Below, piece by piece: positions 768 through 64,000 of a stretch of 64,000 nt of DNA. Under the pieces are notes generated by a model that had not been told where the DNA came from, ran no database searches, and saw only the letters and a program-made list of their open reading frames with translations. Origin of the DNA: Penicillus capitatus (Eukaryota; Plantae; Chlorophyta); NCBI GenBank assembly GCA_965649825.1, contig OZ287695.1, positions 372,001 through 436,000 on the forward strand, given 5' to 3'. Numbering within the stretch: the first letter of the stretch is position 1; each line of letters begins with the position of its first letter. A program made the translations under genes and the position numbers.

Positions 768-3700
768 TCATGGCTTCAGCAGATCCTGGAGTTCTGTTTT
801 AGTTTGTTCCGTACACACATCGACGTGTGTACAGATAACGTCGTACGGTTTCTTGCCGTCGTCATTTTCGATTGTCTTGAGTTTCGTTCCCATCGAAGTA
901 TACACTAACGCCTACCGACACAGTTGTTATCGATCACGCCACCGAGTCAAGAACGCGGCTCACCTCGACCGACTCAATTTTTCCAAAGGATGCACCATAG
1001 TGCATCGCTGTGCTTCCCCCATTGTCCTTGGCGTCAACGATTGCACCGCTGTCCAGGAGAGTCTAAGGAAAACATCAATGCGGACTCTCCGAGTGCACGT
1101 CTTACTTCAATGATGTCTTCATTTCCTCGGGTTGTGGCATACATGAGAGGCGTCGTATCGTGTGGCGCCAGCCTATACTCAACATTGGCTCCACGTTTTA
1201 GCAGGAACTACAAAGTTCCACTGGATTAGAGAACGCAGAGGCTGTCACTGACAGACTTTGAGTGCTTTTCTGGAAATCTGATCTATTGCCTCGTAGAGAG
1301 CAGTTTCCCCAGCTCCATCCGGTTGGTCGATTTGCGCTCCGTTATCGAGAAGAAGCTTCGAACAGAGACAGATGGTCAGGGGAGGAGGACTGGCAGCAAC
1401 ACTGGCCTACTTCGACGATGTCCACATTATTGTTTCGTGTTGCTATGTGAAGGGCTGTATCTCCCGTCTGGGTTGGTTTCGTCGGATCGGCGCCGTTTTG
1501 CAGGAGAAACTGCACGTCACGTCTTCAATGACAACGAGTTGGCTCAGCTGTTTGGACTTACCTTCACAATGGCAGAGCTGTCGTCTTTGACGGCAACGTG
1601 AAGCACGTTCATTCCTCTGCGGTTCAAAGCAGATGTGTCCGCTCCTTTGTTGACGAGAACCTTCAAAGCACCCATTCATCAGAAGCATCGAAACAGATAC
1701 CGCCCTGACTTTGACAATCTCTGTGTATTCGTATTTGACTGCTGCATGAAGAGCAGTGTCAGCTGTTCTGTCGGCGATGTTGACATCTGCTCCGGCATCG
1801 ATGAATGCCTGCGGGCGAACAGCCTTCCGATAGGAAACTCAAGATAACAGTACAGGTATTACCTTTACAATCTCCAGATTGTTGTTCTCGACGGCAACGT
1901 GGATTGCTGACTTGTGATCGGCGTCAAAAGTGTCAACGTTGGCGTGGGCTGCAATGAGAATCTTCGAAGAGCAAGTGCATTAGAGCGAATGGCAGCTGAA
2001 GGAGGACTTACTGATACGATCTCTGTTTTTCCTAGTTCAGTTGCGATGAAGAGTGCCGTTTTTGAATCGACAGCTGTGTCCATATTGATATTACTGCTGA
2101 CGAGTGCCTTTAAACAATGATCGTCAGGCAGAAACTGAAAATAGGCTTGTCAGCTATACCTTTGCCATCTCAACGTATCCATTCTCCACTGCGATGTGGA
2201 GCGGGGGCTGCTGCTTGTCGTTTTTGCCAAGATTAGCATCTGCCTTAGCTTGGATGAGCATCTGTGGACAACAACTGTCGGCACACAGGCGATGAAGAAG
2301 TGTCACGCGCCTTCACGATCTCGAGGTTATTCTGTTGCACTGCAATGAGGAGAGGCGTCTTATCATCGACGATAGTATTCACTTCGACACCATTCAAGAT
2401 GAGCAACTGCAAACCAATCGTTGCCGAATCAGTAAGCGGCAATACATATGAAGGTTTACTTTTGTGATATCTGGGTATTTCTTTTCGACTGCCGTGTGGA
2501 GAACGGTCCAACCTGTTTCGCTGGGAATATTAACATCTGCTTTGGCTGCGATGAGTTCCTGCGATCGACGTTTATCAGATCAAGGACTGGAGACATGACA
2601 TGGTCTCACCGTTGCGATCTCTGTGTATCCCGTCTCAACTGCGGCGAAGAGTGCCGTTCTTCCATCGACGATTTCATTCAAATCAACTCCGCGCTCGATC
2701 ATTTTCTGAAACAACACAAAGTCGAGCCAGAAACTCAAACGAAATCTGTCTCACCACTACAAGTCCCTTGGATCCCTTCAGAACGGCGTCGTAGAAGAGC
2801 GATTTTCCCTCACCGGGGACAGTCACATCAGCCCCCTCTTCGACGAGGTACTTCACGAAAACAAAAGCCGTTAAAACATGGATACAGAGACATTGCCGGT
2901 ACTTCTGCAATCACTGTCTGATCTGTTTCACATGCAAGCTGTAGAGGTGTTTTCCCGGCACCAGGAGCGTTGATATCAGCCTTGTTTTTGATGAGAGTCT
3001 ATGCAGCGCTCATGGTGAACAGGTTTGTCTGTTTCTGGCACACCTTTGTTATTCCGACGAACTTTCCCATCACCGCTTCGTGCAGTGCCGTCTTTCCGTT
3101 GTTGGCGGGAATATTCAGATCAGCATTCACATCGATGAGGGCCTGTAGCACAGCACGTCGCGATCGGATTTCTGTGACGGTCAAATTCGGAGTTACTGTT
3201 AGGGATGACGTGATGTTCTTCATCGCGGACACGTAAACAGATGTGCGTCCTTCAGCGTCGACACGGTTTACATCGGCGCCTCCATTTGCAAGAACCTGGA
3301 AACAACATTGATAGTCGAGATCAGAAATCAGGATATCAATCTGCAGCGCCGCTGCACAAGTATTACCCCTATGCTTTTTGTTGCCTCGTGGACGGTGGCC
3401 CAAAACATCAGCGTTGATTTGTCAGCAAGGCCGCCCGTCGTCAACTCTGCTTTGTTGAGAAAAGTATCGGGGTGCAGTTTGTTTTGAAGAAGCTCATCAA
3501 CTGTAGCAGATTTGTCATCTTTGATAGCCGCGATTATCGCCTAGTGTTCAATGAAATTTATATGAGATGAAGAAAGTGGCTCTGGTTTACGATGTAACGA
3601 CCATCAGTTGAACCAAGAGAAGGAGTAGGCTCCGGCGAAGGGGTCTCGACGGGCAACGGTGGTGTCTCGGATTCAATTGGAGGCTCCGGCGAAGGGGTCT

Positions 3701-5244
3701 CGACGGGCAACGGTGGTGTCTCGGATTCAATTGGAGGCTCCGGCGAAGGGGTCTCGACGGGCAGCAGCGGTATCTCGGATTCAATTGGAGGCTCCGGCGA
3801 AGGGGTCTCGACGGGCAGAGGTGGTGTCTTGGAGACAATTGGAGGCTCTGGCGGAGGGGTCTCGACGGGCAGAGGTGGTGTCTTGGAGACAATTGGAGGC
3901 TCTGGCAGAGGGGTCTCGACAGGAGGTGGTGTCGCTGGCGGTTCCTCTTTTTTGGGACATTTCTACAGAGAACAGCGACACATGTAAGGATTTCGCATTC
4001 GAAACAAAATCCTGAGATGTAGCCAAGTTGTAACCCAGAATGGAAATGTGAGATGGCATAGAGCACATGACCTACCTTGCATTTTTCGCAGAGAAATGGA
4101 TCTGACGGGAGGGGTGATGGCTTCTCCTTTATCTTGCACTCGCTTGGTGGAGTCTTGCCAGCCATCGTCTCCAGAATCCAGTCTCTGTAGTACGAGATGC
4201 TCGTCAGAACATTACAATCCCTGTAATAAGGAAGGTAAGGATCATAAGATGTGACACCGACCAACAGATCCTCGCCGGGATATCCCTTGCCGACATCGCA
4301 TGGTCCATCTGCCACCACAACAGGACCTCCGTCCAGACCTTGAAGCACACGAGCACTAAGGTTCAGCTTGGTGTTCTGCCTCACACCTGTTTTATCATTT
4401 TCATCTTTTCCGCAAAAGCAGAGCCAGCCATCTCTGGGGACGTCCCCACTCTGGCTTCGACATCGCCCTTTCCAAGCCGGGTAAAGCGACAGGTAGCTTT
4501 GCGTCCCACAGATGTCCGATCTGCCGCCGCCGATTTCCCATCCAGGCATCAGCATGTCCTTTTCTCCGTAGACCATCCCTCTTCGAAACAGCCTTGGCGT
4601 TTCCAGGTGTGCCGCTTTGTCAAGTTTGAGCATGGCCAGGTCGGAGCCTCTCTTTACGTTCCCCGTCCAGCCACTGTGGATGTAGGCGTCTTTAACGTGG
4701 AATCTCTGTCGCCGAACACAGCGGATTCGACCGCGGCGTCTCGCCTGCGACGACGGCTTACCTTCTTGGAGGACGTCGTGTTGATATGGTAGATCCCGCA
4801 GTACACCGTCGGGTAGCACCCGACTGAACCCTCGTGGTTCGGGTCGACGCAGTGCGCCGCCGTCAGGACCCATCGTTTGTTAACGAGTGTGGCCGTGCAC
4901 TCGTGGTTTCGGCTTCCGGCCAGTCGCAAACTGCATAGGTACGGAAATCTTCCTGGTGAACCTTCAATCCTGTGGCACAGCCCGTTCTCGTCGTCGGTCA
5001 CATCGCCACTCAACGGCGCGGAGATTTTCTCGTCTCCGTTCGAGATGAGCGAAAGGAACCCGTCGCGGCGGCCGAACCCTGGACAAAGCAGCGTTAGGGT
5101 TGACGGCAGGATGCCTTCGACGGCACCTGAACTGGCGAATGTTGGGCTCGGGCCACAGAGCAAAACGCAGAGCAGCAGAATCGAAAACGCATGGTCCTTT
5201 TTCTTGAGACAGCACGGCCCGAACAAACGCACGTGTTCAAGCAT
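768..5244 (-). CDS. Trypsin-ankyrin fusion copy 1: signal peptide, catalytically dead S1A domain, Pro/Glu linker, about 16 ankyrin exons, Cys cap; carries a 1-nt frameshift near 2660
   Basis: ATG 5244 MLEHVRLF...AFSILLLCVLLCGPSPTFA. Motifs WVLTAAHC and DLAMLKLD. Spliced DKT-GLDGGP replaces GDSGGP. Ankyrin exons end in phase-0 GT donors. Last exon ends ICTHVDVCTEQTKTELQDLLKP* (TGA 770-768). One ANK exon is 95 nt versus 96 nt in copy 2. Confidence 0.85.
3627..3935 (-). repeat. 54-bp coding tandem repeat (about 5.7 units) encoding ETPSPEPPIESETPPLPV in the linker of copy 1
   Basis: ggctc(c/t)ggc recurs at 3628, 3682, 3736, 3790, 3844 and 3898 (period 54 = 18 codons). The minus-strand frame between protease and first ankyrin reads as a Pro/Glu/Ser/Thr repeat. 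Confidence 0.9.
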
Positions 5245-11289: not shown

Positions 11290-14200
11290 TTACGTTCTCC
11301 CAGGAACGAATGGTTTTATCTTCAAGAGTTCTGCGAGATCATCCCGAACTTTTTTCGCGCATGCCTCTTTCTGGCAGATAACTTTGTAAGGAGTATCTCC
11401 CTTTTTGTTCTCGATTATCTTAATCCTCTTTTCCGGTGCCGCTTTCTCCAGCAGCGTCTATAGAGGTAGTTATGATCAAGCCGAGTGATTGAGATTCGGC
11501 TCACCTTAGCAGCCTTGCGTTGTCCGTGACGAGCGGCATAATGAAGTGCAGTGTTACCGTTGCGGTCAACGGCGTCGACCTCCGCTCCGTGGGCGATGAG
11601 TATCTTAGAAAACAGACATCGATGCAGACAGCGTCTAAAAATTCGGATCGCACTTCAATCATCCTCTCATTTCCTTCTTCGGCGGCCAGCATAAGGGGCC
11701 TCTTTCCAATTCTCTTCATTCCGAACTCGATATCGGCTCCATGTTCCAGCAAGGCCTACATTGTCCCACTGCGCGAGAAACCTCAGCGATTGTTACTGGC
11801 ATACCTCCAGTGCAGGGCCGGAGTTCTGATCTGTTGCAACGCAGAGAGGAGATCGCCCTTTCTCATCGGGCTCGTCAATTTTTGCTCCTTTGTGGAGAAG
11901 TGCCTTCGAACATCGACCGTCAGAAAGGACCAGAAAAACGACACTGGCCTACTTCAATAATATTGACCCTTCCTCTTCGAGCCGCAAGGTGAAGTGCTGT
12001 ATCTTTCGTTTCAGTTCTTAGTTTTGGATCGGCGCCATTTTTGAGGAGAAACTGCACGTCGAATGAGTCTTCGCCTCTGCTTGGATAAACATACCTTTAC
12101 AATCTTACAGTTTTCGGTTTCGACGGCAATGTGCAGCGCGTTCATTCCATATCCATTCCAAGACTTGGTATCTGCTCCTTTCTCAACAAGAACCTTCAAA
12201 GCACTTGTCCGTCAGAAGCATTTGAAACGGATGTCATCCTCACCTCGACAATCTCTGCGAATTCGCCTTTTACGGCTGCGTGCAGAGCAGTGTTATCCGA
12301 TGTGTCGACGATGTTGACATCTGCTCCAGCATCGATGAATATCTGTGGTGGGCAGTCGTCAGATCAGAAACGCAGAATGAGATAGGTGGTACCATAACAA
12401 TATAGGTGAAGTTCTTCTCAGCTGCAAGGTGGAGGGCGGTCTTATGCTCAGCGTCGAATGTGTTGACGTCAGAGTCTGCTGCAATGAGAATCTTCAAATG
12501 TTAGAGGATTAGCCAGAATCACAATTGAAGCAGGATGTACCGATACAATTTTGGCGTTTCCTAGTTCAGTTGCGGTATAGAGTGGCGTCTTTCCATCCAA
12601 AGAGGTCGCATTCACACTTGCGTTACCTTCGATGAGTGCCTACAATCAAGTATCGTAAGCTACAAACTGAGGTTAATTATGTCATCCGCACTATGACAGT
12701 TTCAATATATCCCTTCTCCACTGCGATGTGAAGTGGGGTCTGTTGTTTGTCGTTGATATAGTAATCAACGGCTGCGTGCGCTTGGATAAGCATCTTCGAA
12801 CAATAACCATCAGCACGCAGTCTATGACGAAGTGTCATTTACCGTTGCAATCTCTGTGTGGCCCTCTTCCAAGGCAATAAGAAGAGGCGTTCGCTTGTCA
12901 ACTACAGCATTCACTTTGGCGCCGCTTTCAATAAGCAACTGCAAACCAATGACAGTCGGACCAGAAAGGAGTGATGTGTTCTGGTGCTCACTTTTGTAAT
13001 ATCTGGGTACTTCTTTTCAACTGCGATGTGGAGAACGGTCCAGCCTGTGGCGCTGGGAATATTAACATCGGCATTGGCTGCTATGAGATCCTGTATCGGC
13101 ATCAATTTGGATCAAGGATTCGAAACAAGACAGGGTCTCACCGTTGCGATCTCTGTGTATCCCATCTCAACTGCGGCAAAGAGTGGTGTTTTTCCATCGA
13201 CGATTTCATCCACATCAACGCCGTGCTTGATCATTTTCTTGAACAACAGAAAGTCGAGACAGAAACTCAAACGAAATCTGTCTCACCAATACGAGTGCCC
13301 TGGATCCCTTTAAAACGGCATCGTAGAAGAGTGATCTTCCCTCACCGGCGACAGTCACATTAGCCCCCTCTTCGACGAGGTACTTCGAAGAGACAAAAGC
13401 CGTTTCGGAAAATGGATGCAAACATTGCCGGTACTTCTGCGATCATTGTCTGATTTGTGTCCCATGCAAGCTGCAGAGGTGTTTTCCCGGCACCGGGGGC
13501 ATTGATATCAGCTTTGTTCTCAACGAGAGTCTATGCAGCGCTCATGGTGAACAGGTTTGTCTGTTTCTGGCACACCTTTGTTATTCCGACGAACTTCCCC
13601 ATCACCGCTTCGTGCAGTGCCGTCTTTCCGTTGTTGGCAGGAATATTCAGATCAGCATTCACATCGATGAGAGCCTGTATCGCAACACGTCGAGATCGGA
13701 TATCTGCAGAGGATCGAATTCGGAGTTACTGTCAGGGATGACGTGATGTTCTTCATCGCGGACAGGTAAACAGATGTGCGTCCTTCAGCGTCGACACGGT
13801 TTACATCGGCGCCTCTGTTTGCAAGAACCTGGAAACAACATCGATAATCGAGATCGTGAAGCATGATGTCAATCCGCAGCGCCGCTGCACAAGTATTACC
13901 CCTATGCTTTTTGTTGCCTCGTGGACGGTAGCCCAAAACATCAGCGTTGATTTGTCAGCAAGGCCGCCTGTCGTCAACTCTGTGTTGCTGAGAAGAGTAT
14001 TGGGGTTCAGACTGTTTTGAAGAACCCATAGGACCATGTCAATGTTGTCCTCATTGATTGCCAGTATTATAGTCTAACATCCAATAAGATAAATCGATGG
14101 TGCAGACAGTGACATTTCTCACGTTGTATAGTTTTTTTGGAGGATAAACCGGCCTAGCCGGCAAAACAGGTGATGGCGTCGGCGAAGTCTCAGACGTAGC

Positions 14201-15598
14201 ATCCGACGTTGATGTTTTCTTAGGTGGAGTCTTCTTGTGTGGAGGAGGCGTCTTAGGAGGAGTCTTCTTAGGTGAAGGCGTCGCTGGCGGCTCATACTTT
14301 TCTTTGGGACACTTCTACAGAAAACAACGCGCGTATGAGCATTCGCATCCAAAACAGTATTTTGACAGGTGGTTGAGCCAGCAACCAGGATAGAGATGTG
14401 TGATGTGACAGATAGCACAGGACCTACCTCGCATTTTTCGCAGAGATGTGGATCAGATGGGAGTGGCGGCCACTCTTTCACGTTGCACTTGCTCGGCGGA
14501 GTCTTGCCAGCCATCGTCTTCAGAATCCAGTCCCTGTAGTACGCGACGCTGGTTTGAATCGAACACTCTCCGTATCCCTGAGGCTCGGGATCGAATGACG
14601 TGACGCCGACCACCAGATCCTCGCTGGGAGTCCCCTCTCCAACAGCGCACGGCACATCGGCCAACACAAGGGGACCCCCGTCCAGACCTTAAAGCACACG
14701 AGGATAGAGAGATGGCCGGTTTGGATGTCCCACCCTCCCACCTGTCTTCTGCTCAGCCTCTTCCCCGCAGAAGCAGAGCCAGCCGTTTCCCGGGACTTCC
14801 TTGCCCTTGCCTCGACACTCTCTGCGCGGAGACCGGTGCATCGACAGGTAGCTCTGATATCCGCAGCTGTTCGAACTGCCGTCGCCGATTTCCCATCCAG
14901 GCGTCAGCATGTCCTTCTTTCCCAGAACCATTCCATTCCGAAACAGCCGTGGCGTCTTCAGACGCGCCGCCTTGTCAAGTTTGAGCATGGCCAGATCAGA
15001 GCCTCTGGAGACGTTCCCCGTCCAGCCTCTGTGGATGTAGGCATCTTCGACGTGGAATCTCTGTCGCCCAACGAAGCCAGATCAGCCACAGCGTTTCGTC
15101 CGTGATGGCTCACTTTCTTCTCAGTGGTCGTGTTGACCTGATAGATGCCGCAGTACACAGTCGGGTAGCAGCCGACGGAGTCTTCGAAGTTCGGGTCGAC
15201 GCAGTGCGCCGCCGTCAGGACCCATCGCTCGCCGACGAGTGTGGCTGTGCACTCGTGCTTCCGGGTACCGGCCATTCGCAGACTGCATAGGTACGGAAAT
15301 CTTCCCGGAGAACCTTCAACTCTGTGACACAGCCCGTTCTCGTCGTCGGTCACATCGCCGCGCGACGCCGTCGAGATTTCCCCGTCGCCGTAGGAAACGA
15401 GCGAAACGAATCCGCCTCGACGGCCAAACTCTAGACAGAAGCAGTCTTAGGGTCAACCGGCATGATACCATCGATGGCACCTGAACTGGCGAATGTCGGG
15501 CTGGGCGCACACAGAAACGCGCAAAGAAACAGAATCGCAAACGCGCGACCCTTTTTCTTCGGACGGCAGGACGCGACTGAACGAACATGTTCAAGCAT
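11290..15598 (-). CDS. Trypsin-ankyrin fusion copy 2: signal peptide, dead S1A domain (GLDGGP), Lys/Pro/Thr linker, ankyrin array, Cys cap
   Basis: ATG 15598 MLEHVRSVASCRPKKKGRAFAILFLCAFLCAPSPTFA. WVLTAAHC. Spliced EQKT-GLDGGP. The ANK exons checked are in frame. Ends VICQKEACAKKVRDDLAELLKIKPFVPGRT* (TAA 11292-11290). Confidence 0.88.
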
Positions 15599-16109
15599 GA
15601 CTGCCTCGAGCAGCAAAACACTTGAATCTGAAAAACCCATGTCAAGTGTTCTTTTGTAGTCCGTTTAATTTTGGTTCTAAGCTAGCAACATTTTGCCGCA
15701 TGTTCATGTAGTACACACACTCCTGCGTGATGATTTATCGTCGCAGAATCCCACGTGAACTCCCAGCGTTAGCGTGCTTACCCCGATGGCAGCATCGGAT
15801 TCGTTCCGCTGGCGTATTTGCGCGCGATGCTGCATCTTTTGCAACCGTATTCCGCGAGATGGTGCGTCGTCGTGAAGATAATGATGCTCTAAATTGTACG
15901 AGTGTTCCTACTGAAATGACAGATCGTTTTTTGACTAGCTTTTTCTTTCGTCGACTCGTCTTTTGGATTTGAAATAAGATCTTCCTTAGTCTTTTGTCTT
16001 AAAATCGCGATTCTGATCACAAAACCATGCGCCGCCACATCGTTTTCGACTGTCGGCGATTCTCTTGTGCTCAGATCTGGCAAATTGTATGACGCCCACG
16101 ACGTAAGGC

Positions 16110-17010
16110 TATGCAGACGTACCGTCCACTGTCGGACAACAAGCTGAAGCTGGTATCGTTTGGTTGAGAGGTGGTCGTGTTCGCCACATCGGATGTTGCA
16201 GGAGATGATCCACGCGCTGCAGGAGGACGACCCTATCAAGGCGGACAGTCTACTGCTGACAGGCGTCAGCGCCAACAGTCGATACAGCAGCTACACTGTT
16301 GGGCGTTAGTATGCGAATCACCGTAAGCAACCACCGCGACTATTTCACACTCAATTACCATTCAAGCTCCTCTGAACCATGGAGAGCGATGGTTTAATGC
16401 CCTCGTCGCAACTTCCCCATAACGATGGGGATATGGTTGCTGAACTCACACAAGTTCGCAGCTGTTAGAACTTAAGGTTAGGAAACCTTAACTTCCTTGG
16501 GTATTTAAAGACGGCGAATCTCTCTTAAGTAATCTCGAATTCTTGTGCTAAGTCTAAGTGCGTCTTCATCTTCGTCGTCCGCGAGCGTAGCGACTCAAAG
16601 TTATTCAAGAAGTTTACACGATTCCTGACATACAGCACTCTACACATGTTGCCAGGATCAACTCTGCTTCCTTTGGCAACTGCGTACGATTCTATTCAGT
16701 GCGCGAGGGTGAGTGTCTCCGTCCGAAAGAACAGACATCTGCGGAAAGGCGGCTACTGAGCTGCCGGTGCCTGTTGTCGAAGATTCTGCTGCTGGCGAGG
16801 ACAGAGCTTGATGGGTTGAATGATGACGGGGGAACATCTCTACACGGCGGCATCGTTCGGATCGAGCAAAAGTGACAAAGGTGAGGAAGGGTGGACACAC
16901 ATGCCCATACTCTTAGCGTTTTCTCTCCGTTCCGCCTCCTATGTCGGAGCAGGACATTCGTCGCTCCCTACCTACAACTGATCGACTCAAGCAGGGCTTG
17001 GTCATTGAAC
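16110..17010 (+). pseudogene. Relic of a plus-strand trypsin-ankyrin gene (linker end plus first two ankyrin exons)
   Basis: Colinear with 51440-51995 (agacgtaccgtccactgtcggac...gcaggagatg...gaccctatcaaggcggacagtctactgctg). Interrupted by the insertion at 16297-16630 and cut off by unrelated sequence at about 17010. Confidence 0.85.
16297..16630. mobile_element. Probable solo LTR (334 nt)
   Basis: Insertion absent from the paralogue at about 51620. Starts TGTT and ends TGACA (TG..CA). Flanked by tacac / tacag, a 5-nt target-site duplication with one mismatch. Confidence 0.55.
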
Positions 17011-17039
17011 GATTTATTATCTGCTTACTACCGTGTTCT

Positions 17040-21900: not shown

Positions 21901-22318
21901 TCCTTCGGGGTCCACGCAGTGAGCCGCCGTCAAAATCCATTGCGGCTTGATAAGCGTCGCCCCGCAGGCATGCGAATGGCTTCCGCGTTCACGCATGCTG
22001 CACATGTACGGAAATCTTCCACGCTTCGCTTTTGCGCCTCCCTGTAGCACACGGCTCAGATAATGACGGTTGAGATGCTTCCGCGTCGATAGACGCACCA
22101 CTATCTTCGCGTAGATGTCGTTGGACGCCTCGCGCCATCCTTGTCCTAGAAACGCGTCAAATGGACGGATAATGGGAACTACGCTCACCCGTTTCCTGGC
22201 TGCCGTGAGTTGGCCACGACAGCAGGAGTAGCCACAAGTGTATTGCTAGGTGCGTCATTTCTGCCGCCTTTCTTTCCGGGCGTCGACGTCCCTTTTCTGA
22301 ACAACGGTGCTCGAGCAT
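18963..22318 (-). CDS. Trypsin-ankyrin fusion, predicted active protease, about 12 ankyrin exons plus Cys cap
   Basis: MLEHRC...MTHLAIHLWLLLLSWPTHGS signal. Spliced AK-IVGG activation site. WILTAAHC, DIAVLKLD, spliced QDTCQ-GDSGGP. Ends YVCSNPDAHCSEKTRRDLIKLLTP* (TGA 18965-18963). Alternative start at 22258. Confidence 0.9.
19234..20420 (-). repeat. Tandem exon+intron units of about 147 bp (99-nt ankyrin exon plus about 48-nt intron) with a 588-bp higher-order duplication
   Basis: gatcagcacctgcgaccgtccatc (or a close variant) recurs at 19234, 19380, 19528, 19675, 19822, 19968, 20116 and 20263. Units at 19380/19968 and 19528/20116 are near-identical, introns included (offset 588). Confidence 0.92.
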
Positions 22319-50192: not shown

Positions 50193-53100
50193 ATGCCCGC
50201 CGACATGACACCGTATCCTCTCCGTCTGGCATTGCTCTTCATCTTATGGCCGAGTCACTGCATTCAAGGTTCGCCAAACGCAGACGCGACGCAAACGCTG
50301 CTATCGACTGCGCTGCAGATTTGGAGCGCCACACCGCCATGTCCAATATCCTTGATCCCAAAATCGCCGTCAGCAGCCATCCCCCCACTATGCTCTCTCC
50401 GGACGCCAATGCCGTTCTAGGGTGGAGTGGATGCTCCGAAGGGAAGATTCCCATACATGTGCAGTTTGAGGAAGAGGGGGTCGCAGGAACACATGTGCGG
50501 CGGCACGCTCATCCAGAAGACGTGGGTCTTAACCGCTGCACATTGTCTGATGAACAAAGCAGGCCGTGCTCTCGGTTACTACCCCATCGTGGACTGCAGC
50601 ATCTACCACGTGGACATCGTCGCCGACCATCTGGTAACTTCACAGTCCAGCGAATCCGAGATCACGGCGTTCTGCTCCAGACGTTTGCCACCATCGACTC
50701 TCACGTCCATCGAGATTGGAACGGCGATGTCGACGATGGATTCGACATCGCCATGCTGAAGCTGAACAGAGAAGCGGAATTGATCTCTCCCCAGATCGAT
50801 AAGAAAGGCGTATTGCTTTCACAAGGCGATTACCTGAGCGCCGTCGGCTGGGGAACGACGCAGAAGGCAGACATAGCAGACGTGTTGCAGATGGCCCAGC
50901 GTTTGGTCTACATCTCAAGGAACAACTGCGAACGCGTTCTGGACATGAAGCTGAAAGAACACATGATCTGTGCAGGAATGCTCGATCAAGATACGTGTCG
51001 AGGTGGATACCGCCGAGCGATTCGCTTCGCTTCGTTACGATGGCACCGCGCGTGACTTCATGTCTTTCGCTGACAGGCGACTCGGGTGGTCCACTCTTCT
51101 TGGCAAGTGCTCCGAAGGGCAAGGTGAAAAAGGGACTGCCGGCACTCGACTTGCTCGTTGGTGTCACATCGGCCGGCCGCCAGACAGAGATAGATGGAAC
51201 CGTCGTTTGTGATGCCAGCGTGCCCGGGGTGTACACGAATGTCTCGTTCTTTTGGGACTGTGCGTTTGTCAATAGCCACTCGCACTCTCACGAGGCCGCA
51301 TTTTTTGTTAGGGATTTCAGGGATCATCGAAGATGGCAGCGAGGTTACATCTTCGCTAGCTTCCTCTTTACCCTCCATCGGCTCTGTGTTAGACGGTCGG
51401 TCAGGGACGCTTGTGGAAAAAGGAGGCAAAGGAGCTCCGAGAGACGTACCGTCCACTGTCGGACGACGAGCTGAAACTGGTATCGTTTGGCTGAGAGGGG
51501 TCGTGTTCACCGGATCGGATGTTGCAGGAGATGGTTTACGCGCTGCAGGCGGACGATCCGCTCAAGGCGGACAGTCTGTTGCTGGCAGGCGTCAGCGCCA
51601 ACAGTGAGTACACCAACTACACCTTTCTGTACATGCCGCCAGGATCAAGTCTACTCCATTGGGCAGCTGCGTACGATTCCCTTCAGTGCGTGAAGGTGCG
51701 TGTCTCCGTCAAAAAAGAACAGGCATTTGCGGACGCCGCGGTTGCTGAGCTGCCTGTGTCTGCTGTCGAAGATTCTGCTGCTGGCGAGGGCAGAACTCGA
51801 TCGGCTGAATGATCTATGGGAAACCTCTCTCTACACAGCGGCATCGCTCGGATCGAGCAGAGTGACAAAAGTGAGGGAGAGTGGACACACATGCCCATGC
51901 TCTTTGCGTTTTCTCTTCGTTCCGGCTCTGATGTCGGAGCAAGGCATTCGTCGCTCCTAACCCACAACTGATCGATTCGCGCACGGGGCCTCGACCATTG
52001 AACGATATTTATTATGTGCTTAGTATCTGTTGGATTTTGGAGCAGAGAAGGATCGAGCGTCCCGGGAAGGCAAGACTCCATTGCATGCCGCCGCCTGGAA
52101 CGGTCACTACCATGTTGTCAAGGTTCGGTTTTCGGTTGAGCCAGTCGCCCTGTGAACAGCGACAGTCGCATCCAGATACTCGTCGAAGAAGGGGTGGATT
52201 TAGAGCCGAAGGACAGCAGAGGACAGACGCCGCTGCATCTGGCGGCGAGAAACGGAAGTGCAAAGATCGTGAAGGTGACCGGCCTTCTCCTGTCTTGTAA
52301 GGACGAGACAGTCCGCACAGAAACTCATCTCCAACAACGTCGCGGTGGACGTGCGAGATAATCGCGAACAGACACCTCTGATCCTGGCTGCAAAAGGTGG
52401 AAACCTCAAAGCGGTCAAGGTGAGCATGTGCTGTCAATGAAAGAGCATGCATCTCTGTGGATGGACCGGTTAGGTGCTCATCAGGGCAGGCGCAAATGCG
52501 AGCGCAGTTGACAGCGATGGCAGATCTCCGTTGCTTTCTGCATCGAAAGATGGAAATCTCGAAATCGTCAAGGTTGTGTCTGCCCCTTTGCGCCTCCGCT
52601 GCAAAGGCATGTATCGCAGGAACTCGTTTCCCATGCAGTGGATATTGAATCGCCGGACAACAAAGGGACGACGCCGTTGATGGTGGCTGCTGAGGAGGGA
52701 CATCTCGAGATCGCAAAGGTAAGACTTTGGCGTCCCCGACGCCACATGTCTACGGGACTTGTACGAAGGAGCTCATAGCGAACGAGGCAAACGTAAGCGC
52801 TACGGACAATCTCGGGAAAACGCCACTCCATATGGCGGCTCGCAATGGCGACGCCGAAGTCGTCAAGGTTCGAAGACGTCTCCCGAATCCCTTCCAGAGC
52901 ATTGCGCTGCTAACAGGTGCTCCTGTCCGAAGGGGCCGATGTTCATGCAAAGACGCAGACGGGAAGAACGCCGCTCATTGAGGCATCCTACTATGGGCGC
53001 TTCCAGGCCGTCAAGGTTCGGTAGCGGGCTCGAGATCTCGCGTTCCGTTTCGGCAGCTTTCATTTCAGGAACTCCTCGCCAATGACGCAGATCCCAATGC

Positions 53101-53814
53101 GGCGGACAACTCCGGCGCTCGTCCTTTGCTTGAGGCATCGAAGTACGGGTACGTGGATACTGTGCAGGTTCGAGGACGGCGTCTCGCCTGAGGACTCGGC
53201 CAGGGGTGATGGTCGGTAGGCGCTAGAAGAGAGTGGAGCCGACGTGAACGCGACGGATCTGCAAGGAAGGACTGCCCTGTCTCTGGCCTCTTCTTCCGGG
53301 AAAGTCGACGTCGTAAAGGTGACTCGTTCGCAGACGTTTGCGCATCCGCTGTCTGATATCTCGAAAACAGGCTCTTCTGTCATACGGCGCGGACATGGAC
53401 GCTGCTACAAGACCCGGGGGTGCGACAGCGCTGCACCAAGCGTGTACGTCGTCCAGACGAGTGGAAGTGATAAAGGTCGAGTGTCGAATGGTGTCTCTCG
53501 CGCATCTAAGCGAATCTGAAAGGTTCTGGTTGAAAATGGCGTGAATGTCGACAAGCCCAACGACGAGGGAAAAACTGCGTTGCATATTACATCTCAACGT
53601 GGATACCTCGAAGCCGCCAAGGTAGAGACGGACCATCCATCTGCTAAGGCGCAGGACGCAACAGAGTGTTGATTAGGCTCTGGTAGAAGGAGGAGCCGAC
53701 AAGACTATTAGAGACGGCGACAGCGAAACGGCTCTGGATGTTGTCTGCAGCTACGCCTACGCCTATTGTTCTGCGGAAACGAAAGCCGCTTTGGAGAAGC
53801 TCCTGGCATTGTGA
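50193..53814 (+). CDS. Trypsin-ankyrin fusion, predicted active protease, 13 ankyrin exons plus Cys cap
   Basis: MTPYPLRLALLFILWPSHCIQ signal. Spliced PK-IAGG. WVLTAAHC, FDIAMLKL, spliced DQDTCR-GDSGGP. Thirteen phase-0 ANK exons. Ends VVCSYAYAYCSAETKAALEKLLAL* (TGA 53812-53814). Confidence 0.9.
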
Positions 53815-54765
53815 GAATCCCTATCTTGGTTGCTCTTTTCTACATAGGAATGTATATCGAGTGCAACGTGAGAAATCTTTATCGTTGTGAAGAACCGGTG
53901 GTGCGATGAAATGACTATCAGCAGTTTGTGCACAAATGAGAGTGATCGCAACAGAAACGAGAAAAACTGCGAAATGCTCACGGTTTATTGTCATCTGGCA
54001 ACTCGTCTTTCTCAGCAGTTCGTAATGCGAAGCCTTGGTCTTGTGCGAAGCCAGACTCGGCCATAACGAATTGTCACGCGGACAGAGCGAAGACGCTGTG
54101 GGAGAATGGTTAATTTTTTTTCTCCGAAACGAACTCGACATTGAAGGTCTGCAAACCGAAACACTGTTGCGGGGAAGTACGTCTCTTGGTTTTGTTCTGT
54201 ATTCGATCGCACATGTCCCATCAACGTAAAAACTGTCGAAACGTTGAATTAAGATGTTGCCGTCGCCGACGCATCATAGTGATTCACTGCTGAAGAGAAT
54301 CTTCGTCGATGAATTCCTAACGAAGAAGACGAACAAGTAATTTTTATGTGCGGGAGAAGAAGAGATTGCCAAGGGAATAACACTATTCAGGTTTATACCA
54401 TTCAAGGTTGTTGCTGCCGTTCTACCCACGACAAAAACTTCGTCGCGGCAGCCGCTCAGCAGCATCGGATTACGATCGCTGATAGATCCAGCCAGAGAGA
54501 GTCTTAGTCAAGAATGTACGCGCCCTGTACGCGCCTTTCTCATTCGACATCGCCCTTACGGAACTGCACGTTGCTCATGAAACCGACACTTTCAGAATGG
54601 TAGCGTTGTTCCTTCGCGATTAAATGGCTGCTCGATTTCGCGGTAAATGTAATGGCGGCGAAGATCAGACCTAGCGATTACGTTGCAGCGAGTGTTAGTC
54701 GACACAAGAACAACACACAGCGTCAGATTCCGTTGCTGCAGAGAGGACAAAAAGATGCAGGGGGT

Positions 54766-55744
54766 TCAAACACGCAAGAGTTCAGCGAACGCTGCTTTAG
54801 TTTTATCCGAGCACTTGGCGTTTCTGTCGACACAGACACGATTCAACGGAATCTTGTTATCCCTGTGGGCGGTATTTTTGTTTGCTCCAGCTGCTACGAG
54901 CATCTGCCCATACTTTCTATAGGTATGCGGCGGTTAACGCAATCGGTGGCTTACCTTAGCACTTTGCAGTTTGCCATAATGACCCGCCATCTGCAGCTTC
55001 TTCGCGACGACGCCGTCTTCGGTCAGTCCCCACCCCGTGGCACCAAAATATTGACCCTTGTCCAGGGGAACGTAGCCCGTGCCCAATCGCGGCAGCGTCA
55101 CGTCTGCGTCTCTGTCAAGCTTCAGTACAGCCACGTCGTGTCCATGTCCGATGACGCCTGCCCACTTGGGGTGAACGTATCCTGCGATTGCATCAAAGAC
55201 CTGCGCCGACACAGCGCGCTTTGCTCTATCCGAGAGCAATTCGCAGCTACCTGGTCGTCTTCCGCCTTCCTACGGTCGTGTATTCCGCAGTAGACGATGG
55301 GCGACAGGCCAATGGTTTCGTGGTCTTTAGGGTCCACGCAGTGAGCCGCCGTCATGACCCTGTCGCGTCTGAACAGCGTCGCCCCGCACATGTGGCGGTG
55401 AGTGCCACGTTCTCTCAAGCTGCATGTGTATGGAAACCACCCAAGTGGTGCCGTCTTCCCTCGCTGTCGACCGTTGGCCTTGAATTCTGCGGCAAAAACG
55501 TTTGTAACGCTTACCACTATTCTTCCGACGGCGGTTGTCTTCGACTCAGAGCTTAAGCCACTGTTGTCCAATGCTTCGCACAAGAGAAGGTCGTACGAAT
55601 GCAAGATTTCAGGTTTTTCGCACATTGAGTGTCGACGGATGCCCGTGCCGTCAGTAACAGCGAGTGCAGCGTCAAGTTCGTCAGCGCGAAGAGCCATTTC
55701 TTCGAGCGGTGTGCTTGTGTGGAAGACCGACGAAGCGCAAACAT
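54766..55744 (-). CDS. Internally deleted, in-frame trypsin-ankyrin mini-gene (signal peptide + N-terminal protease part + last half-ankyrin + Cys cap)
   Basis: Paralogous to the 58829 gene through ..VAKKLQM, then continues in frame AGHYGKLQSAK. After a 51-nt intron (54954-54904): MLVAAGANKNTAHRDNKIPLNRVCVDRNAKCSDKTKAAFAELLRV* (TGA 54768-54766). The Ser195 region is absent. Confidence 0.75.
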
Positions 55745-56235: not shown

Positions 56236-58829
56236 TCATGGCGCCAGTAGTTTGGTAAATTCGTTCCGAGTCTGTTCAGAACAATCAGCATTTGCGTCAG
56301 CACAAATGAACGCGCGAGGAGGGTTTCCCTTTCTATTCAAGTTCGACTTCGACGCTCCAGCAGCGACGAGGACCTGGAAAGCGTCGTCTATTCGGCCGGA
56401 TGCTTTCTGGCTTACTTTAGCAATGTTCAGATGGCCATGATTTGATGCCCCATGCAATGGAGTCCAATCGTTTGAAACGGCAGTGTTGACGTTTGCGTCG
56501 GCTTTTATAAGGATCTGCATCTTGTCGTTTTCTAAGTGAACAAAAATGCGAAGACGCGAATCCGACCTTCGTAATCTGTAGGAAGCCACGGTTTACGGCT
56601 ATATGCAGTGGTGTGTAATTGTATTGGTTAAAAACGTCGACGTCTGCCCCAGCGTCAACTAGAGTCTGCCTTCCATCGTCTTTTAAAAGAGATCGGATCA
56701 AAGGCGTGATTCCTACCTTTACAAGTTCAGTGTATCCTTTTTCGGCTGCTGTGTACAGTGGAGTATAACTGGCATCGTTCGCAGTGTTGACGTTTGCACC
56801 GGCTTCGATAAGGATCTGTATCCCGTGGTCTTTAAGTGAAATAGAAGCGAAGGTGCGATTCTGACCTTCACGGTCTGCACAAATCCGTATTTTACAGCTT
56901 CGTGCAGTGGTGTCCAACTGTGTCGCTCGAAAACATCGACATCTGCGCCGTGGGCGACAAGAAGCTTCGGCCATCTTCATCATGAGATTCGAAAGAAACA
57001 GGAGGTTTACCTTTACAATCTGGAAGCTCTTATGTTGAACCGCAAAGTGAAGCGGAGTCCGATCGTCACGGGAGAATGCATTCATGTCTGCCCCATGATG
57101 AAGCAGCACCTGCTTGCACGACCGATGGTAGGAGACTTGATGCTGTTCGATCTTGACGACCTTTGTCGCCTCGACGCTATCGTAGATCGCCGTCGTGTGC
57201 AGAGCGGTTTCTCCATCGGCATTTCGGGTATCGATTCCTGCCTTGTGCTTTATCAACACCTACAAGCCACAACCAGAAATCAGAGGACGACAAGTCTGAA
57301 TACAGTCCAGCCAATTCGTTCTCCGGCCTTGCCTCAGCGCAGAGTGGGGCGTCGAAGACAGCGGCCGCGTGCAGCAAAGTCGAGCCTTCTTTCAGCTGAG
57401 GTCTGGATTTGTCGACTTCGAAAGTGGCGTTAGCGTACAGTCCAGACAAGAGAAGCGCCTCGGCATCAAGGGGATTGTCCTCCTTGATCGCACGAAGCAT
57501 CTCCTGTGCAGAACCCTGTCTATCTGGCTTTGCTATTGATGTACTGTACCGAGATCGTGTCCGACTCTGACAGGATGGCGTAATGCTTGCGTCTCTCTGT
57601 AAGCCTCCATTGCCATTTTCCTCCGTCTCCCGAACACTGCGCGCATTTACAGAAGATAAAGAAAGCGACACTCTTTCTTTGTTCCGATCTCACATCAGGA
57701 TGACAGTCGATGATCCACTCGATCCAGTCCAGGAAGTAATCGACGCTCGTGTAAATAGCTGGCTCAATTCCAGAACATGGCTCAGCGTCGTCGTCTTCCC
57801 TGTAGCCGAACGACGTGATACCGATGATCAGGTCCAGTCGCGCTTTCCCGTCATCCATGCTTCCATAAGGAGCGTCCATCAGCAGCAGAGGACCTCCAGA
57901 GTCACCTGTCGAACAGCGCGAACGTTGCTTGTACGAGGGTGCAGCAGGGTCAGTCCAGATGACCTTTGCAAGTGTCCTGCTGCAGTCCTCCAGCGCATAT
58001 CCAACTCTTTGGGTCGACGCCTTGGGGCTGTGCTATGCATTTGTCTTGCCCGACGACGGCGAGCTTTGCTGTCACTTGCAACTTCTTTGCTGGGACGCCG
58101 GAATCCGTGTTTCCCCATCCTGTCGCAGCAAGAAGCCCGCCCTTGTCCAAGGCGACATTGCCCGAACCCAAACGCGGCAGTGTCAAGTTGGCGTCTCTAT
58201 CAAGCTTCAGCACGGCGACGTCGTGTCCATGTGCGACGTCGCCTGTCCACTTTGGGTGAACGTATCCTGCGATTGCATCAAAGACCTGCGCCGACACGGC
58301 GCGGTTTGCGTCTGTCTACGAGTGATTCGCAGCTACCTGGTCGTCTTGCGCCTTCTTGCGGTCGTGTATTCCGCAGTAGACGATGGGCGACAGGCCAATG
58401 CTGGGGCGAGAGTTAGGGTCCACGCAGTGTGCCGCCGTCAGGACCCAGTCGCGTCTGAACAGCGTCGCCCCGCACATGTGGCGGTGAGTGCCACGTTCTC
58501 GTAAGCTGCACGTGTATGGAAATCTTTCAGGCGGCGCCGTCTTCCCTCCCTGTCAACCGTTGACTTGCTGCTTCGCGACAGAGGCTTCGAGCCGCTTACT
58601 GTTATTCTAGCTTCGATGACTGTGTTCGACTCAGAGCTCAAGTCCGTGTCGTCCAAAGCTTCGCAGAAGAGAAAGTTGTACGAATGCAGGTGTTTCCGTT
58701 CTCTGTACCTCGACTGTCGGATGCTGCCCACGACGTCAGCAACAGCGTGTGCAGCGTCAAGTTCGTCAGTGTGAAGAGCCATTTCTTCGAGCGGTGTGCT
58801 TGTGTGGAAGACCGACGAAGCGCGAACAT
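56236..58829 (-). CDS. Trypsin-ankyrin fusion, predicted active protease, 7 ankyrin exons plus Cys cap
   Basis: MFALRRSS...WLFTLTNLTLHTLLLTSWAAS signal. Spliced EAR-ITGG. WVLTAAHC, HDVAVLKLD, spliced QQDTCK-GDSGGP. Ends FICADANADCSEQTRNEFTKLLAP* (TGA 56238-56236). Confidence 0.9.
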
Positions 58830-59323: not shown

Positions 59324-59600
59324 TTAGGGTGTAAGCAGTTTGATGAGATCTGTCCGAGTCTTTTCGGAACAATGAGCATTCGCGTCAGCACAAATGAATG
59401 CGAGAGGACTTTTTCCCTTGTCGGTCAAGCTCGACCTCGACGCTCCAGCAGTAAGGAGGATCTAGAAAGTGTCACTTGCTCAACGGCGAGGCATTCCGGC
59501 TTGGTTTAGATGACCGTTATATGATGCCAGATGAAGAGGTGTCCAATCGACAGTTGTCGTGGCGTCCACGGTGGCACCGGCTTCAATTAGAACCTGTAGC
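59324..59600 (-). pseudogene. 3' relic of a trypsin-ankyrin gene (last ankyrin + cap), splice donor deleted
   Basis: VLIEAGATVDATTTVDWTPLHLASYNGHL, then ILLTAGASRSSLTDKGKSPLAFICADANAHCSEKTRTDLIKLLTP*. Close to 18963-19230. The flank at 59150-59320 matches 18770-18960 and 56060-56230. Confidence 0.85.
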
Positions 59601-61797: not shown

Positions 61798-64000
61798 ATG
61801 CAGCGCTCGGTGTCCGTTGCTATTCTCTATCTTTTTTCCTCTCTAGTGTCTCTACCGTATGGTATCCACTGTGTATTCAACAAAGAATCCCGTCTCTCCG
61901 CCTTCGGTTTCACATGGCTCAATGGGACAACCTCCGCCAATGCATCCGACGGCCACGTCCATCGAGAATCGACAGTACACACCGCATTATCCAGATGCTA
62001 CCCTCTCTAATAACACGCATCGTGCATGCCTTCTGACAGCAGAATGACGAAGCGGGTAACTCCACCTCATTTCTCTCGCCTTCAGCCGAGGGAGATGCTG
62101 TGCAACAGGTCGTGCTGACCATAGCGCTCTCGATGTTCAAATTGAAACGAGAATCATCGTATTGTGGATCATACATTCCCCCCACGCAAGCCGTCCTTCG
62201 TTTGTCCTTTTCAGGGAGGAAACCAAGCGCCGAGAGAGAGATTTCCGTACATATGTAGCATTAGACGCCGCGGCACCGAAGAGCATGTTTGCGGTGGAGC
62301 ATTGATCGACGAGCAATGGGTCCTCACAGCAGCGCATTGCCTGCACAATAACGATAATACTGGACTGGGCCATTACGCTCTCGTGCGTTGCGGCATTCAC
62401 GAAATCAACGCCGACGATCCCGAGAGTGTAAGCCGCAAGGATGTGGGAGCGCAGTACCAACGGCATCGTGCGATTCTAGCTCTACCTCTCGAAGAGAGCT
62501 TACTGGCACAGCAAATGGACGGGCGATGCCATGCGCGGGTATGATATTGGTCTCATTCGACTGGACAGAAAAGCGCCACTCCACCTGCCACGCATCGACA
62601 AGATTGGCGTCTCGCTGCAAGTTGGCGATTACCTGACGGCCGCTGGTTGGGGGAGCACCGACAAGAAACGGACATCGAACGTCTTGCGAGTCGTCGACAA
62701 GCTCATCTACGTCGGATCGCAACAATGCGCACCAGATCTTTTCACGAATCTCGGGGCGCACACCATCTGCGCTGGCTCCTTCGGACGGGATACCTGCCGC
62801 GGTGAGCGTGTTCGATACTGCACGGTTTCGTCAGGACTGTCGTCTATCTCCTGTGGTGTTGAGGTGACTCGGGGAGTCCTTTGCTGCTCTCGCACCGCCC
62901 AGAAGGCGATCTGACGCAAGGAGTGCCACGCAGCGATCTCATTGTCGGTGTTACGTCACTAGGTTCAAAGAACTGTGACGACGAGCGTCCTGCAGCGTAC
63001 ACGAGGGTCGCTCACTTTTGGAATTGGATAAAGGAGACGATGGAGACACAGTCTGGGGTGAGTGGACCTCCGACGGCACACCTCGTCGTTTCGCTTTCTG
63101 TCGTCAGCGATTCGGTTTTTTCGCATGGCGTCTGGCCAGAAGCCGCGATCTCTTGGCAGTCCTTCTTGTCGGAAGCTCCATTGTGCGTCGTGTTTGTAGA
63201 TGTACGATCCAGTCTACTTAGAGAAGAAAGAGGATGTCCAAGCGCTGCTCAGAATGAAGGAAGGGACCCCTCGACAGCAACTACACCTTGTGCGATGCCA
63301 TGAACAAACGTTACGTGACGCCAATCCTGTGGATAAAGGAAATGCTGAGAGCCTTTGAGAAGGACGAGAATTGGATCGTCGCAGCGGTTCTGGAGAAAGG
63401 CCTGCCGCTCGATGCGGCTTTCTACGACGACGAGCTGAATGCCGCACTTCTGGTAGAAGGATCCACGATGTTGCACTGGGCGGCGGCATTTGGCGCAATC
63501 GACAGCGCAAAGGTCCGATCGTTCTAAACATCCGAACGACGCCTTCAGTGTATGCCGTATATCGCTTAAACTCTGTGATGCTGTCAAGGTTCTGGTCGAG
63601 CACGGTGCAAACATATCTCGGGTCAACAACGAACGCCTGACGCCCTTACACATCGCGGCCGCATACGGTTCGGCGGCTATGGCAAAAGTACGACTATCGC
63701 TCCGTCGGTCCTTGGAGATCGTCGCTTGATCGACGGACATCGCGTGATACCGACATCGAGAGCACAATGCGCATTTTGCTTCTCTGAACCCACCACGAGG
63801 TCGCTTGGTATCGTTGCTCGCGGATGCTGCAGTCGCCAGCCGTTACCTCGAACTCAGCGGACGCGTGCGTGCTGTAGTTTCTTCTGAATGCTGGAGCCGA
63901 AGTGGACGTGTTTGGTGCCAATGGAGAGTCGCCACTTCTTCTTGCCTCGAAGAACGGCCACGTCGACGTTCTCAAAGTGCGTCTCGGCCAAGCGTGAAGG
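61798..64000 (+). CDS. Trypsin-ankyrin fusion, predicted active protease (runs off window end)
   Basis: MQRSVSVAILYLFSSLVSLPYG signal. Spliced ETR-IIGG. WVLTAAHC, YDIGLIRLD, spliced GRDTCR-GDSGSP. First ankyrin EMLRAFEKD...GSTMLHWAAAFG, followed by further ANK exons. Confidence 0.88.

Follow-up and report, generated by a model that had tools for sequence, protein, structure and literature searches.

The window analysed here is a 64,000-nt stretch of the Penicillus capitatus contig OZ287695.1 (positions 372,001 to 436,000, forward strand). It is eukaryotic, has a G+C content of about 50% and is dense in very short GT-AG introns. Eight loci in this window, L1 to L8, share one plan: a predicted signal peptide, an S1A (trypsin-type) protease domain, a linker, an ankyrin array and a C-terminal cap with two cysteines. 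In all eight, the parts follow in identical order on one strand per locus, and the frame is open over every junction. The original prediction had described eight loci with one architecture, which was borne out by tblastn searches, motif scans, Pfam and the open spliced models; its start at position 768 coincides with the end of the L1 stop codon. The gene models are as follows.

5244..768, minus strand: L1, 22 exons, 1109 aa, complete, 16 ankyrin exons
15598..11290, minus strand: L2, 23 exons, 1045 aa, 16 ankyrin exons
22258..18963, minus strand: L3, 18 exons, 796 aa, 11 ankyrin exons
33474..27999, minus strand: L4, 31 exons, 1285 aa, 24 ankyrin exons
50205..53814, plus strand: L5, 20 exons, 797 aa, 12 ankyrin exons
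55744..54766, minus strand: L6, 4 exons, 275 aa, truncated, no ankyrin exons
58829..56236, minus strand: L7, 14 exons, 627 aa, 6 ankyrin exons
61798..>63976 (window end 64000), plus strand: L8, partial, with the N-cap and the first two ankyrin exons inside the window

Both Trypsin (PF00089) and Ank were detected by Pfam on the raw open reading frames (ORFs), and tblastn together with motif scans located eight trypsin-like segments:

~5295-3980, 15529-14395, 22032-21177, 33432-32237, 55442-55084 and 58531-57974, minus strand: trypsin-like segments
~50427-51171 and 62239-62650, plus strand: trypsin-like segments

A scan for exons of the form AG, open frame, GT showed that each ankyrin repeat has an exon of its own, about 99 nt long and in phase 0. 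Draft models came from a home-made splice-aware gene finder (codon log-odds and splice-site weight matrices), which served as a guide only: a low intron penalty led to over-splicing and a high one kept stop-free introns. Every 5' region and linker was settled by reading the DNA directly. After this curated splicing, the final models of all eight loci are open, with GT/GC-AG introns only. The 3' end of L8 falls beyond the window, and a hidden ankyrin exon sought in its 190-nt intron was not found.

Protease domains, linkers and ankyrin arrays

The complete gene L1 is laid out as follows (a slash marks the predicted cleavage point).

4076..5244, minus strand: L1 exons 1-3, signal peptide (KKKDHAFSILLLCVLLCGPSPTFA/SS), pro-region of about 55 aa ending CHR/IEGSPGRFPY, and S1A domain
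3591..3962, minus strand: L1 linker exon, KCPKKEE, then an 18-aa Pro-rich unit (TPPLPVETPSPEPPIESE) in about 5.4 copies
3367..3540, minus strand: L1 N-cap exon, beginning AIIAAIKDDKSATVDELLQ, a degenerate first ankyrin unit
964..3295, minus strand: L1 ankyrin array, 16 exons of 96-102 nt with one repeat each, introns of 43-71 nt
768..911, minus strand: L1 last exon, final half-repeat and cap, ending GKKPYDVICTHVDVCTEQTKTELQDLLKP before the stop

The spliced L7 protein matches the whole PF00089 profile (4.9e-35, profile 1-220/220) and spliced L1 most of it (4.5e-19, profile 7-220), and the nearest solved structures in a phmmer search against PDB are Der p 3 and matriptase (E ~1e-23). In L3, L5 and L7 the motifs TAAHC, D-[ILV]-A-x-L-K-L and GDSGGP with D189 are all present, so that the triad His57/Asp102/Ser195 is intact; L8 has TAAHC, DIGLIRL at the Asp102 motif and GDSGSP. 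Asp189 lies six residues ahead of Ser195 (QDTCxGDSGGP in L3, L5 and L7; RDTCRGDSGSP in L8), and cleavage after Arg/Lys, that is, trypsin-like specificity, is accordingly predicted for these four copies. L1 keeps TAAHC and DLAMLKL, with GLDGGP in place of GDSGGP. In L1, L2 and L4, Asp stands in place of Ser195 and Leu in place of Asp194, and Cys191 is missing, which means that the protease domain of these copies cannot be a serine protease; the residue at position 189 is Asn. L6 retains only the N-terminal half of the protease, the Ser195 region being deleted. The family therefore includes both enzymes and pseudoenzymes. Two subfamilies can be distinguished, namely A (L1, L2 and L4; inactive, with a Pro-rich linker exon) and B (L3, L5, L7 and L8; intact residues and short charged linkers). 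Candidate activation sites stand at the expected place in L1 (R/IEG), L2 and L4 (R/VEG), L7 (R/ITGG, in the context AR/ITGG) and L3 (R/VLQGG).

The L1 linker is a 54-nt tandem repeat (3627-3920, period 54, 5.4 copies; Tandem Repeats Finder). The separate linker exon of L2 is Pro/Lys-rich with KKTPPK-type repeats, and that of L4 holds the extensin-type run SPSPPPPSP. The linker of L3 is short and basic, and the Pro-rich motif is absent from subfamily B.

The degenerate N-cap unit is common to all copies and to the relatives P0004 and P0014. The ankyrin exons of about 99 nt number from 6 in L7 to 24 in L4, and complete copies add a degenerate N-cap exon and a C-cap exon, in agreement with the range of 7 to about two dozen proposed originally. 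Introns between ankyrin exons span 43-53 nt (34 measured). The 87 repeat exons of the window give the 33-residue consensus vLIxaGADVNAxdxxGxTALHxAAxxGhxdIvK, and, among the ankyrin profiles (PF00023/PF12796), Ank_2 matches the spliced proteins at 1.9e-57 (L7) and 3.6e-98 (L1). All seven visible C-termini have the form C-x4-7-C[ST]...LL. Directly behind the Cys cap, the proteins end in a conserved [DE]LL[KTA][PL]-type motif (LLAP, LLKI or ILKS in relatives), which may be only a capping helix or may be a sorting signal. In L6, which has no array, the protease half is fused within one exon to the end of the last ankyrin repeat, followed by the cap.

A single fused reading frame, its constraint and its relatives

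An ENA assembly contig (ERZ26696514, here L001) is syntenic with window positions 40310-54231 at about 77-85% DNA identity and contains an ortholog of L5 in which 20 of 20 exons are open and the splice sites are conserved. Identity between the two genes is 85% in exons and 77% in introns, with 0.25 and 2.85 indels per 100 nt, respectively, and the exon indels are of 3 nt only. The ratio of nonsynonymous to synonymous substitution rates (dN/dS) is 0.23 overall, 0.18 in the protease and 0.23 in the array, showing that purifying selection acts on the whole fused frame at this orthologous locus. Between L1 and L2, dN/dS is 0.36 overall and 0.30 in the inactive protease domain, indicating that this domain is still constrained.

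Two short contigs carry the fusion in uninterrupted form. A JGI contig of 1340 nt (L002) has one ORF covering the trypsin C-end, a transmembrane-free linker, ankyrin repeats and the two-Cys cap, and a Logan contig of 2574 nt (L003) has a complete 627-aa ORF with signal peptide, Trypsin and Ank. Because the genomic copies are interrupted by an intron after every repeat, both contigs are most simply taken as transcripts; a poly(A) tail looked for at their ends was not found, and it is the uninterrupted ORFs that speak for this origin. Together with the conserved frame of the ortholog and annotated proteins of Bryopsis, Caulerpa and Ostreobium, they show that the protease and ankyrin parts form a single reading frame and a single polypeptide, as had been proposed.

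Among named organisms, the nearest relatives of the protease segments come from Caulerpa lentillifera, Ostreobium quekettii and Bryopsis sp. KO-2023. The signal peptide-protease-N-cap segment of L3 was compared with 1.84 billion cluster representatives in an exhaustive HMMER search, and arrays in the matches were detected by a local hmmsearch with a hidden Markov model built from the window repeat exons. Of the best 150 clusters, 23 have ankyrin repeats on the C-terminal side of the trypsin domain, and all named clusters with this order among those 150 were bryopsidalean. They comprise BSKO_04609, 04685, 04697, 04699, 04714, 04794 and 05102 of Bryopsis sp. KO-2023, all on one 7.4-Mb contig; g4815, g5122 and g8885 of Caulerpa lentillifera, joined by g7614 from a separate search; and CAD7703549.1, scf_693.4 and scf_1041.5 of Ostreobium quekettii. 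The remaining clusters derive from Logan or JGI contigs 2-4 kb long. When the protease-linker-N-cap junction was used in a word-indexed search, only eight matches resulted, mostly unspliced ORFs on ENA contigs; it took the exhaustive search to bring the family into view. Two of the Bryopsis genes stand in tandem, and the Bryopsis relative P0172 has eight consecutive 33-aa repeat exons, so clustering and one repeat per exon are traits of the family. Among named matches the family thus appears restricted to siphonous green algae (Bryopsidales), in which it is order-wide and unannotated, and it is not unique to this genome.

The original prediction had also held that the S1A-ankyrin combination was uncharacterised. 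This stands as far as the literature goes: literature searches on trypsin together with ankyrin in Bryopsidales, Caulerpa, Bryopsis and Halimeda turned up no account of this architecture, and neither trypsin nor ankyrin is named in the main text of the Bryopsis or the Halimeda genome paper. The architecture itself already exists in databases, in which the relatives are present solely as hypothetical or unnamed proteins. For Ostreobium, 189 S1 genes have been reported, about 40% of them with signal peptides, and external protein degradation was proposed (10.1101/2020.07.21.211367); the word ankyrin does not occur in the main text of that paper. One Ostreobium quekettii protein, CAD7695718.1 (P0121, 1348 aa), combines a signal peptide, Trypsin, a transmembrane segment, NB-ARC, LRR and Ank, and the EukProt model of the same locus ends after the protease (353 aa). 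Either the gene model is a merged one, or the protein spans the membrane as a receptor of the NLR type (NB-ARC/NACHT with LRR, HEAT or Ank arrays) whose protease domain lies outside.

In the L5 orthologs, changes within the repeats cluster at exon positions 14, 15 and 26, which correspond to positions 2, 3 and 14 of designed ankyrin repeat proteins (DARPins) and lie on the binding face. Between L1 and L2, dN/dS is 0.52 at binding positions and 0.35 elsewhere. The faster change of binding positions fits a ligand-binding surface that would be outpacing its framework, and is not proof of positive selection. The idea of diversified recognition arrays needs qualification on this point: dN/dS stays below 1.

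With one repeat per symmetric exon, arrays can lengthen or shorten by unequal crossing-over. The L3 array contains about eight copies of a 147-nt exon-plus-intron tandem unit, and the central array of L4 was assembled from two-repeat units. L1 and L2 are whole-gene duplicates (77-89% identity) with paralogous arrays, whereas the 5' halves of L2 and L4 are 86% identical and their arrays different, showing that L2 is a recombinant of an L4-like 5' part and an L1-like array. L6, L7 and the second of the two fragments listed below are tandem units of one kind, and L6 is an internal-deletion derivative.

16114..16711, plus strand: relic fragment resembling L5 residues 286-355 (protease C-end, linker, N-cap)
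59327..59596, minus strand: relic fragment with the last ankyrin repeat and cap, ending FICADANAHCSEKTRTDLIKLLTP before the stop

Whole genes have thus been duplicated, recombined, truncated (L6) and lost. Immediately 3' of the L5 ortholog, L001 has a NACHT-HEAT gene (1377 aa, 15096-19229, minus strand) where the window has L6-L8. The birth-and-death pattern predicted for the cluster is therefore supported by exon-plus-intron duplication and by the difference from a related genome, but the transposon debris said to surround it is not: none of the 20 intergenic ORFs of at least 110 aa has a reverse-transcriptase, integrase or transposase match in Pfam. Two short dispersed repeats outside the gene family (82-85% identity; 24640-24909 with 59635-59904, and 25309-25781 with 48424-48885) are the only candidate traces of mobile elements in the window. 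A weak trypsin-like fragment was observed in L001 (2876-3139, plus strand) between the permease and gamma-carbonic-anhydrase genes; at its counterpart in the window (~43170-43300) the two DNA sequences cease to align, and no match to the family was detected.

Compartment and proposed function

Ankyrin repeats are textbook intracellular modules, usually with intracellular partners. The copies in the window have features of secretory-pathway proteins, as had been claimed: an N-terminal hydrophobic signal, S1A cysteines, an extensin-type run, caps with even numbers of cysteines and Cys-poor arrays. In L1-L5 and L8, the N-terminus has a positive n-region, an h-region and small residues at -3/-1; L1, L2 and L4 share the motif AF[AS]IL[FL]LC..L, L3 has MTHLAIHLWLLLLSWPTHG followed by a pro-region, and MQRSVSVAILYLFSSLVSLPYG is the candidate in L8. 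No transmembrane segment was detected downstream of the N-terminus in the window copies, the linkers included, which agrees with the earlier claim; the highest Kyte-Doolittle mean over 19 residues is 1.57 and lies within an ankyrin helix. In L3, the cysteines of the protease domain are even in number and spaced as expected for S1A disulfides, which implies an oxidising compartment.

Most relatives have clear signal peptides and a Cys cap. Caps with two or four cysteines are present in 19 relatives that lack a transmembrane segment (for example DIICTNQFLDVPC and EICQCVNITDPTRLQCREGGCGEGE) and absent from P0238 and P0263, which have an unambiguous transmembrane segment between protease and array. 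Cysteine makes up 5 of 2866 residues (0.17%) in the 87 window repeat exons and 5 of 3148 (0.16%) in the arrays of capped relatives, against 10 of 517 (1.9%) in the arrays of the transmembrane variants, a roughly tenfold difference (Fisher p 4e-6 and 9e-6). The caps, the Cys depletion, the cysteine spacing of L3 and the extensin-type linkers suggest that folding of the capped arrays takes place outside the cytosol, in an oxidising compartment, whereas arrays that follow a membrane span resemble ordinary cytosolic ankyrin domains.

The explanation that we favour, with a probability of roughly 0.55, is that the eight loci are tandem paralogs of one bryopsidalean family encoding a secretory fusion, an ankyrin-targeted protease or binder with a role in recognition. 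The whole protein, including the array, would enter the secretory pathway and reach the apoplast, the wall or possibly the vacuole. Outside the cytosol, the array would be stabilised by the cap disulfide, and it would have almost no free cysteine. The protease of L3, L5, L7 and L8 is probably a zymogen activated by cleavage at the Arg-Ile/Val site, and the ankyrin groove would act as an exosite that selects a target or tethers the enzyme to it. L1, L2 and L4 would probably act without catalysis, in the manner of animal serine-protease homologues, as binders, cofactors or decoys carried on a Pro-rich stalk that is extensin-like and directed to the wall. Arrays steering an active trypsin-type protease, as originally envisaged, cannot apply to L1, L2 and L4, in which the catalytic serine is absent. 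A role in extracellular recognition during defence or wound response is the least certain part of this explanation; as a hypothesis, a defence or wound-sealing function would fit the biology of a giant coenocyte and the dynamics of the cluster. On a more far-reaching and less probable proposal, the genes would form an algal protease system comparable to clotting or complement, extracellular or stored in the vacuole, in which zymogens are aimed by germline-diversified capped arrays and inactive extensin-stalk paralogs serve as wall cofactors or decoys, sealing wounds, recognising microbes, or both.

Several points weigh against the favoured explanation. Signal peptides were assessed by hydropathy and by eye only, and the signal-like segments of L6 and L7 (KKWLFTLTNLTLHTLLLTSWA in L7) are only weakly hydrophobic. 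The cap disulfide is predicted from the cysteine pattern, and it is by inference that the arrays have ligands and that protease and array share one target. No positive selection was detected in these comparisons, dN/dS being below 1 everywhere but in the short cap exon. The putative activation-site motifs differ among copies, and in L5 and L8 they hinge on uncertain first introns. All models of L1-L8 were read from genomic DNA alone, and some of them require unusual introns. Compared with L1, L2 and L4 have two common 1-nt insertions and a TAG just past the signal peptide; their frame is restored by excising a 38-nt GT..AG segment (15468-15431 in L2 and 33371-33334 in L4, minus strand), which would be shorter than all other introns here (42 nt and up). 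Either this segment is a mini-intron of recent origin, or the two genes, which look constrained in other respects, have a frameshift in common. At the position of the protease activation site, L5 has an in-frame TAG (50418-50420), conserved in the L001 ortholog (L001 ~10200), and depends on a proposed 159-nt first intron to bypass it. Upstream of this TAG, the two genes differ by a 1-nt indel, and both can splice the signal-peptide exon past it, using different AG acceptors.

The unusual first introns required in L2, L4 and L5, together with the clear degradation of L6 and the two fragments, could be taken to mean that adjoining protease and ankyrin genes were joined by mistake or that the cluster is a graveyard of functionless pseudogenes. 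This is most improbable, since 8 of 8 spliced frames are open, dN/dS is 0.23-0.36 over both domains, exon indels in the ortholog come only in threes, and the fusion recurs as proteins or ORFs in three annotated genomes and on the short uninterrupted contigs. The weak N-terminal hydrophobicity of L6 and L7 would also suit a cytosolic location of the arrays, with an N-terminal segment other than a cleaved signal peptide, or with an overlooked membrane span, so that these would be intracellular ankyrin proteins with an odd protease domain. P0238, P0263 and P0121 do have a transmembrane segment between protease and array. However, no window copy reaches transmembrane-level hydropathy, the transmembrane relatives are without the Cys cap and their arrays are ten times as rich in cysteine, and the S1A cysteine spacing of L3 points to an oxidising compartment; we consider this reading very unlikely.

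Two further readings accept the secretory route. The proteins might be digestive or matrix-degrading secreted proteases in which the array only anchors, stabilises or auto-inhibits the enzyme, with no target-specific recognition. The Ostreobium S1 expansion was read as external degradation (10.1101/2020.07.21.211367), and purifying selection overall, with no dN/dS above 1 outside the cap exon, fits a housekeeping enzyme. Nevertheless, three of the eight copies are constrained while lacking the nucleophile, arrays vary from 6 to 24 exons with surface positions changing fastest, and the family is also present in free-living Bryopsis and Caulerpa, which are not skeleton borers, making such a role unlikely. 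Alternatively, the proteins could be stored in the vacuole or in secretory vesicles until wounding mixes the contents, whereupon the arrays would bind cytosolic or cytoskeletal proteins and the proteases would cut them, a clotting-like trigger of the wound plug. The secretory features are the same as under the favoured explanation, and the usual binding partners of ankyrin repeats are intracellular. In L1, L2, L4, L7 and L3, the putative pro-region ends in Arg ahead of I/V-x-G-G, which, in combination with D189 proteases, would allow auto-activation or a cascade, and wound plugging in siphonous algae takes seconds to minutes according to 10.1101/2023.11.22.568388. No sorting signal was identified in the proteins, however, and the extensin-type linkers of subfamily A suggest association with the wall; storage of this kind is quite unlikely.

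The closest known systems include the modular extracellular S1A proteases of animals, such as CLIP-domain proteases, C1r/C1s/MASP and coagulation factors. Shared features are a predicted signal peptide, a putative Arg-ending pro-region before I/V-x-G-G, a D189 S1A domain with an attached recognition module, and tandem clusters in which active enzymes stand beside constrained paralogs without Ser195; non-catalytic S1A homologues in animals include insect serine-protease homologues (SPHs), haptoglobin and HGF. Unlike those of animal cascade proteases, the module of the window genes is C-terminal, is an ankyrin solenoid and belongs to a green algal lineage; we know of no animal cascade protease with an ankyrin solenoid. 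The gene family is real, well delimited and under-annotated, and is a variant of the modular S1A protease with an ankyrin array, a Cys cap and a repeat-exon design. The Ostreobium S1 expansion concerns the same protease family and algal order, with many members predicted to be secreted, but the paper on it (10.1101/2020.07.21.211367) does not describe the fusion, the cap, the exon structure or the inactive subfamily.

Exported or extracellular ankyrin proteins are exemplified by spider alpha-latrotoxin, bacterial Ank effectors, symbiont 'eukaryotic-like' Ank proteins and engineered DARPins. In these the solenoid is a protein-binding surface, as it would be in the window genes, and the variable positions found here match the DARPin binding positions. 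Such proteins act in the host cytosol after delivery or are man-made, whereas here a eukaryote appears to route its own arrays via the endoplasmic reticulum, with a Cys cap, Cys depletion and a fused protease. Subfamily A, with a predicted signal peptide, globular domains and a Pro-rich rod (SPSPPPPSP in L4, six 18-mers in L1), resembles chimeric hydroxyproline-rich glycoproteins of green algae and plants, such as extensin chimeras and the volvocine pherophorins and VMPs. This likeness is one of motif; the globular parts here are an inactive S1A domain and an ankyrin array, and subfamily B has no rod. Clustered paralogs, variable solenoid arrays and birth-and-death evolution are shared with NLRs, and relatives offer a link in the NACHT-HEAT gene beside the L5 ortholog and in the Ostreobium Trypsin-transmembrane-NB-ARC-LRR-Ank model. 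Pfam detected no NB-ARC or NACHT domain in the window genes, and unlike NLRs, which are cytosolic sensors, their products are predicted to be extracytosolic.

If the location is indeed extracytosolic, the family represents a natural and evolutionarily successful ankyrin solenoid adapted to a secretory or extracellular milieu and fused to a protease. This bears on the repurposing of repeat scaffolds, which is relevant to DARPin-type engineering, on the modular building of protease specificity outside animals, and on the defence and repair of metre-scale single cells. Moreover, the one-repeat-per-exon design is a simple genetic route to variation in array length. Bryopsis sp. KO-2023 has a cluster of family genes (BSKO_04609 to 04794), and with assays already published for RNAi (PMC12961179) and for regeneration it makes these proposals testable.

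Neighbouring genes and minor features

The genes between the eight loci are ordinary and encode a NOX-like ferric reductase, a bestrophin, a kinesin, a xanthine/uracil permease, a gamma-carbonic-anhydrase-like protein and a WD40 protein. Like the protease segments, the bestrophin points to a bryopsidalean alga as the source, with best matches in an ENA metagenome contig (92%), a EukProt protein with a Caulerpa-style identifier (59%), Bryopsis (49-52%) and Ostreobium (46-48%). A GDSGG match at 41640-41876 (minus strand) sits within the xanthine/uracil permease gene and was rejected as a chance match. The ORF at 22301-23392 (plus strand) contains an NAD-binding domain of the ferric-reductase/NADPH-oxidase type (PF08030, 5e-26) and is arranged head-to-head with L3, just upstream of its signal-peptide exon. 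Within the L1 array, the intron at 2262-2310 (minus strand) has a GC donor (AAG/GCGCGT, the slash marking the exon end) rather than GT, and a GC donor likewise occurs once in the L5 ortholog of L001. A tandem repeat with a 25-nt unit (9.8 copies, 97% matches) occupies 47693-47937 in an otherwise unannotated stretch.

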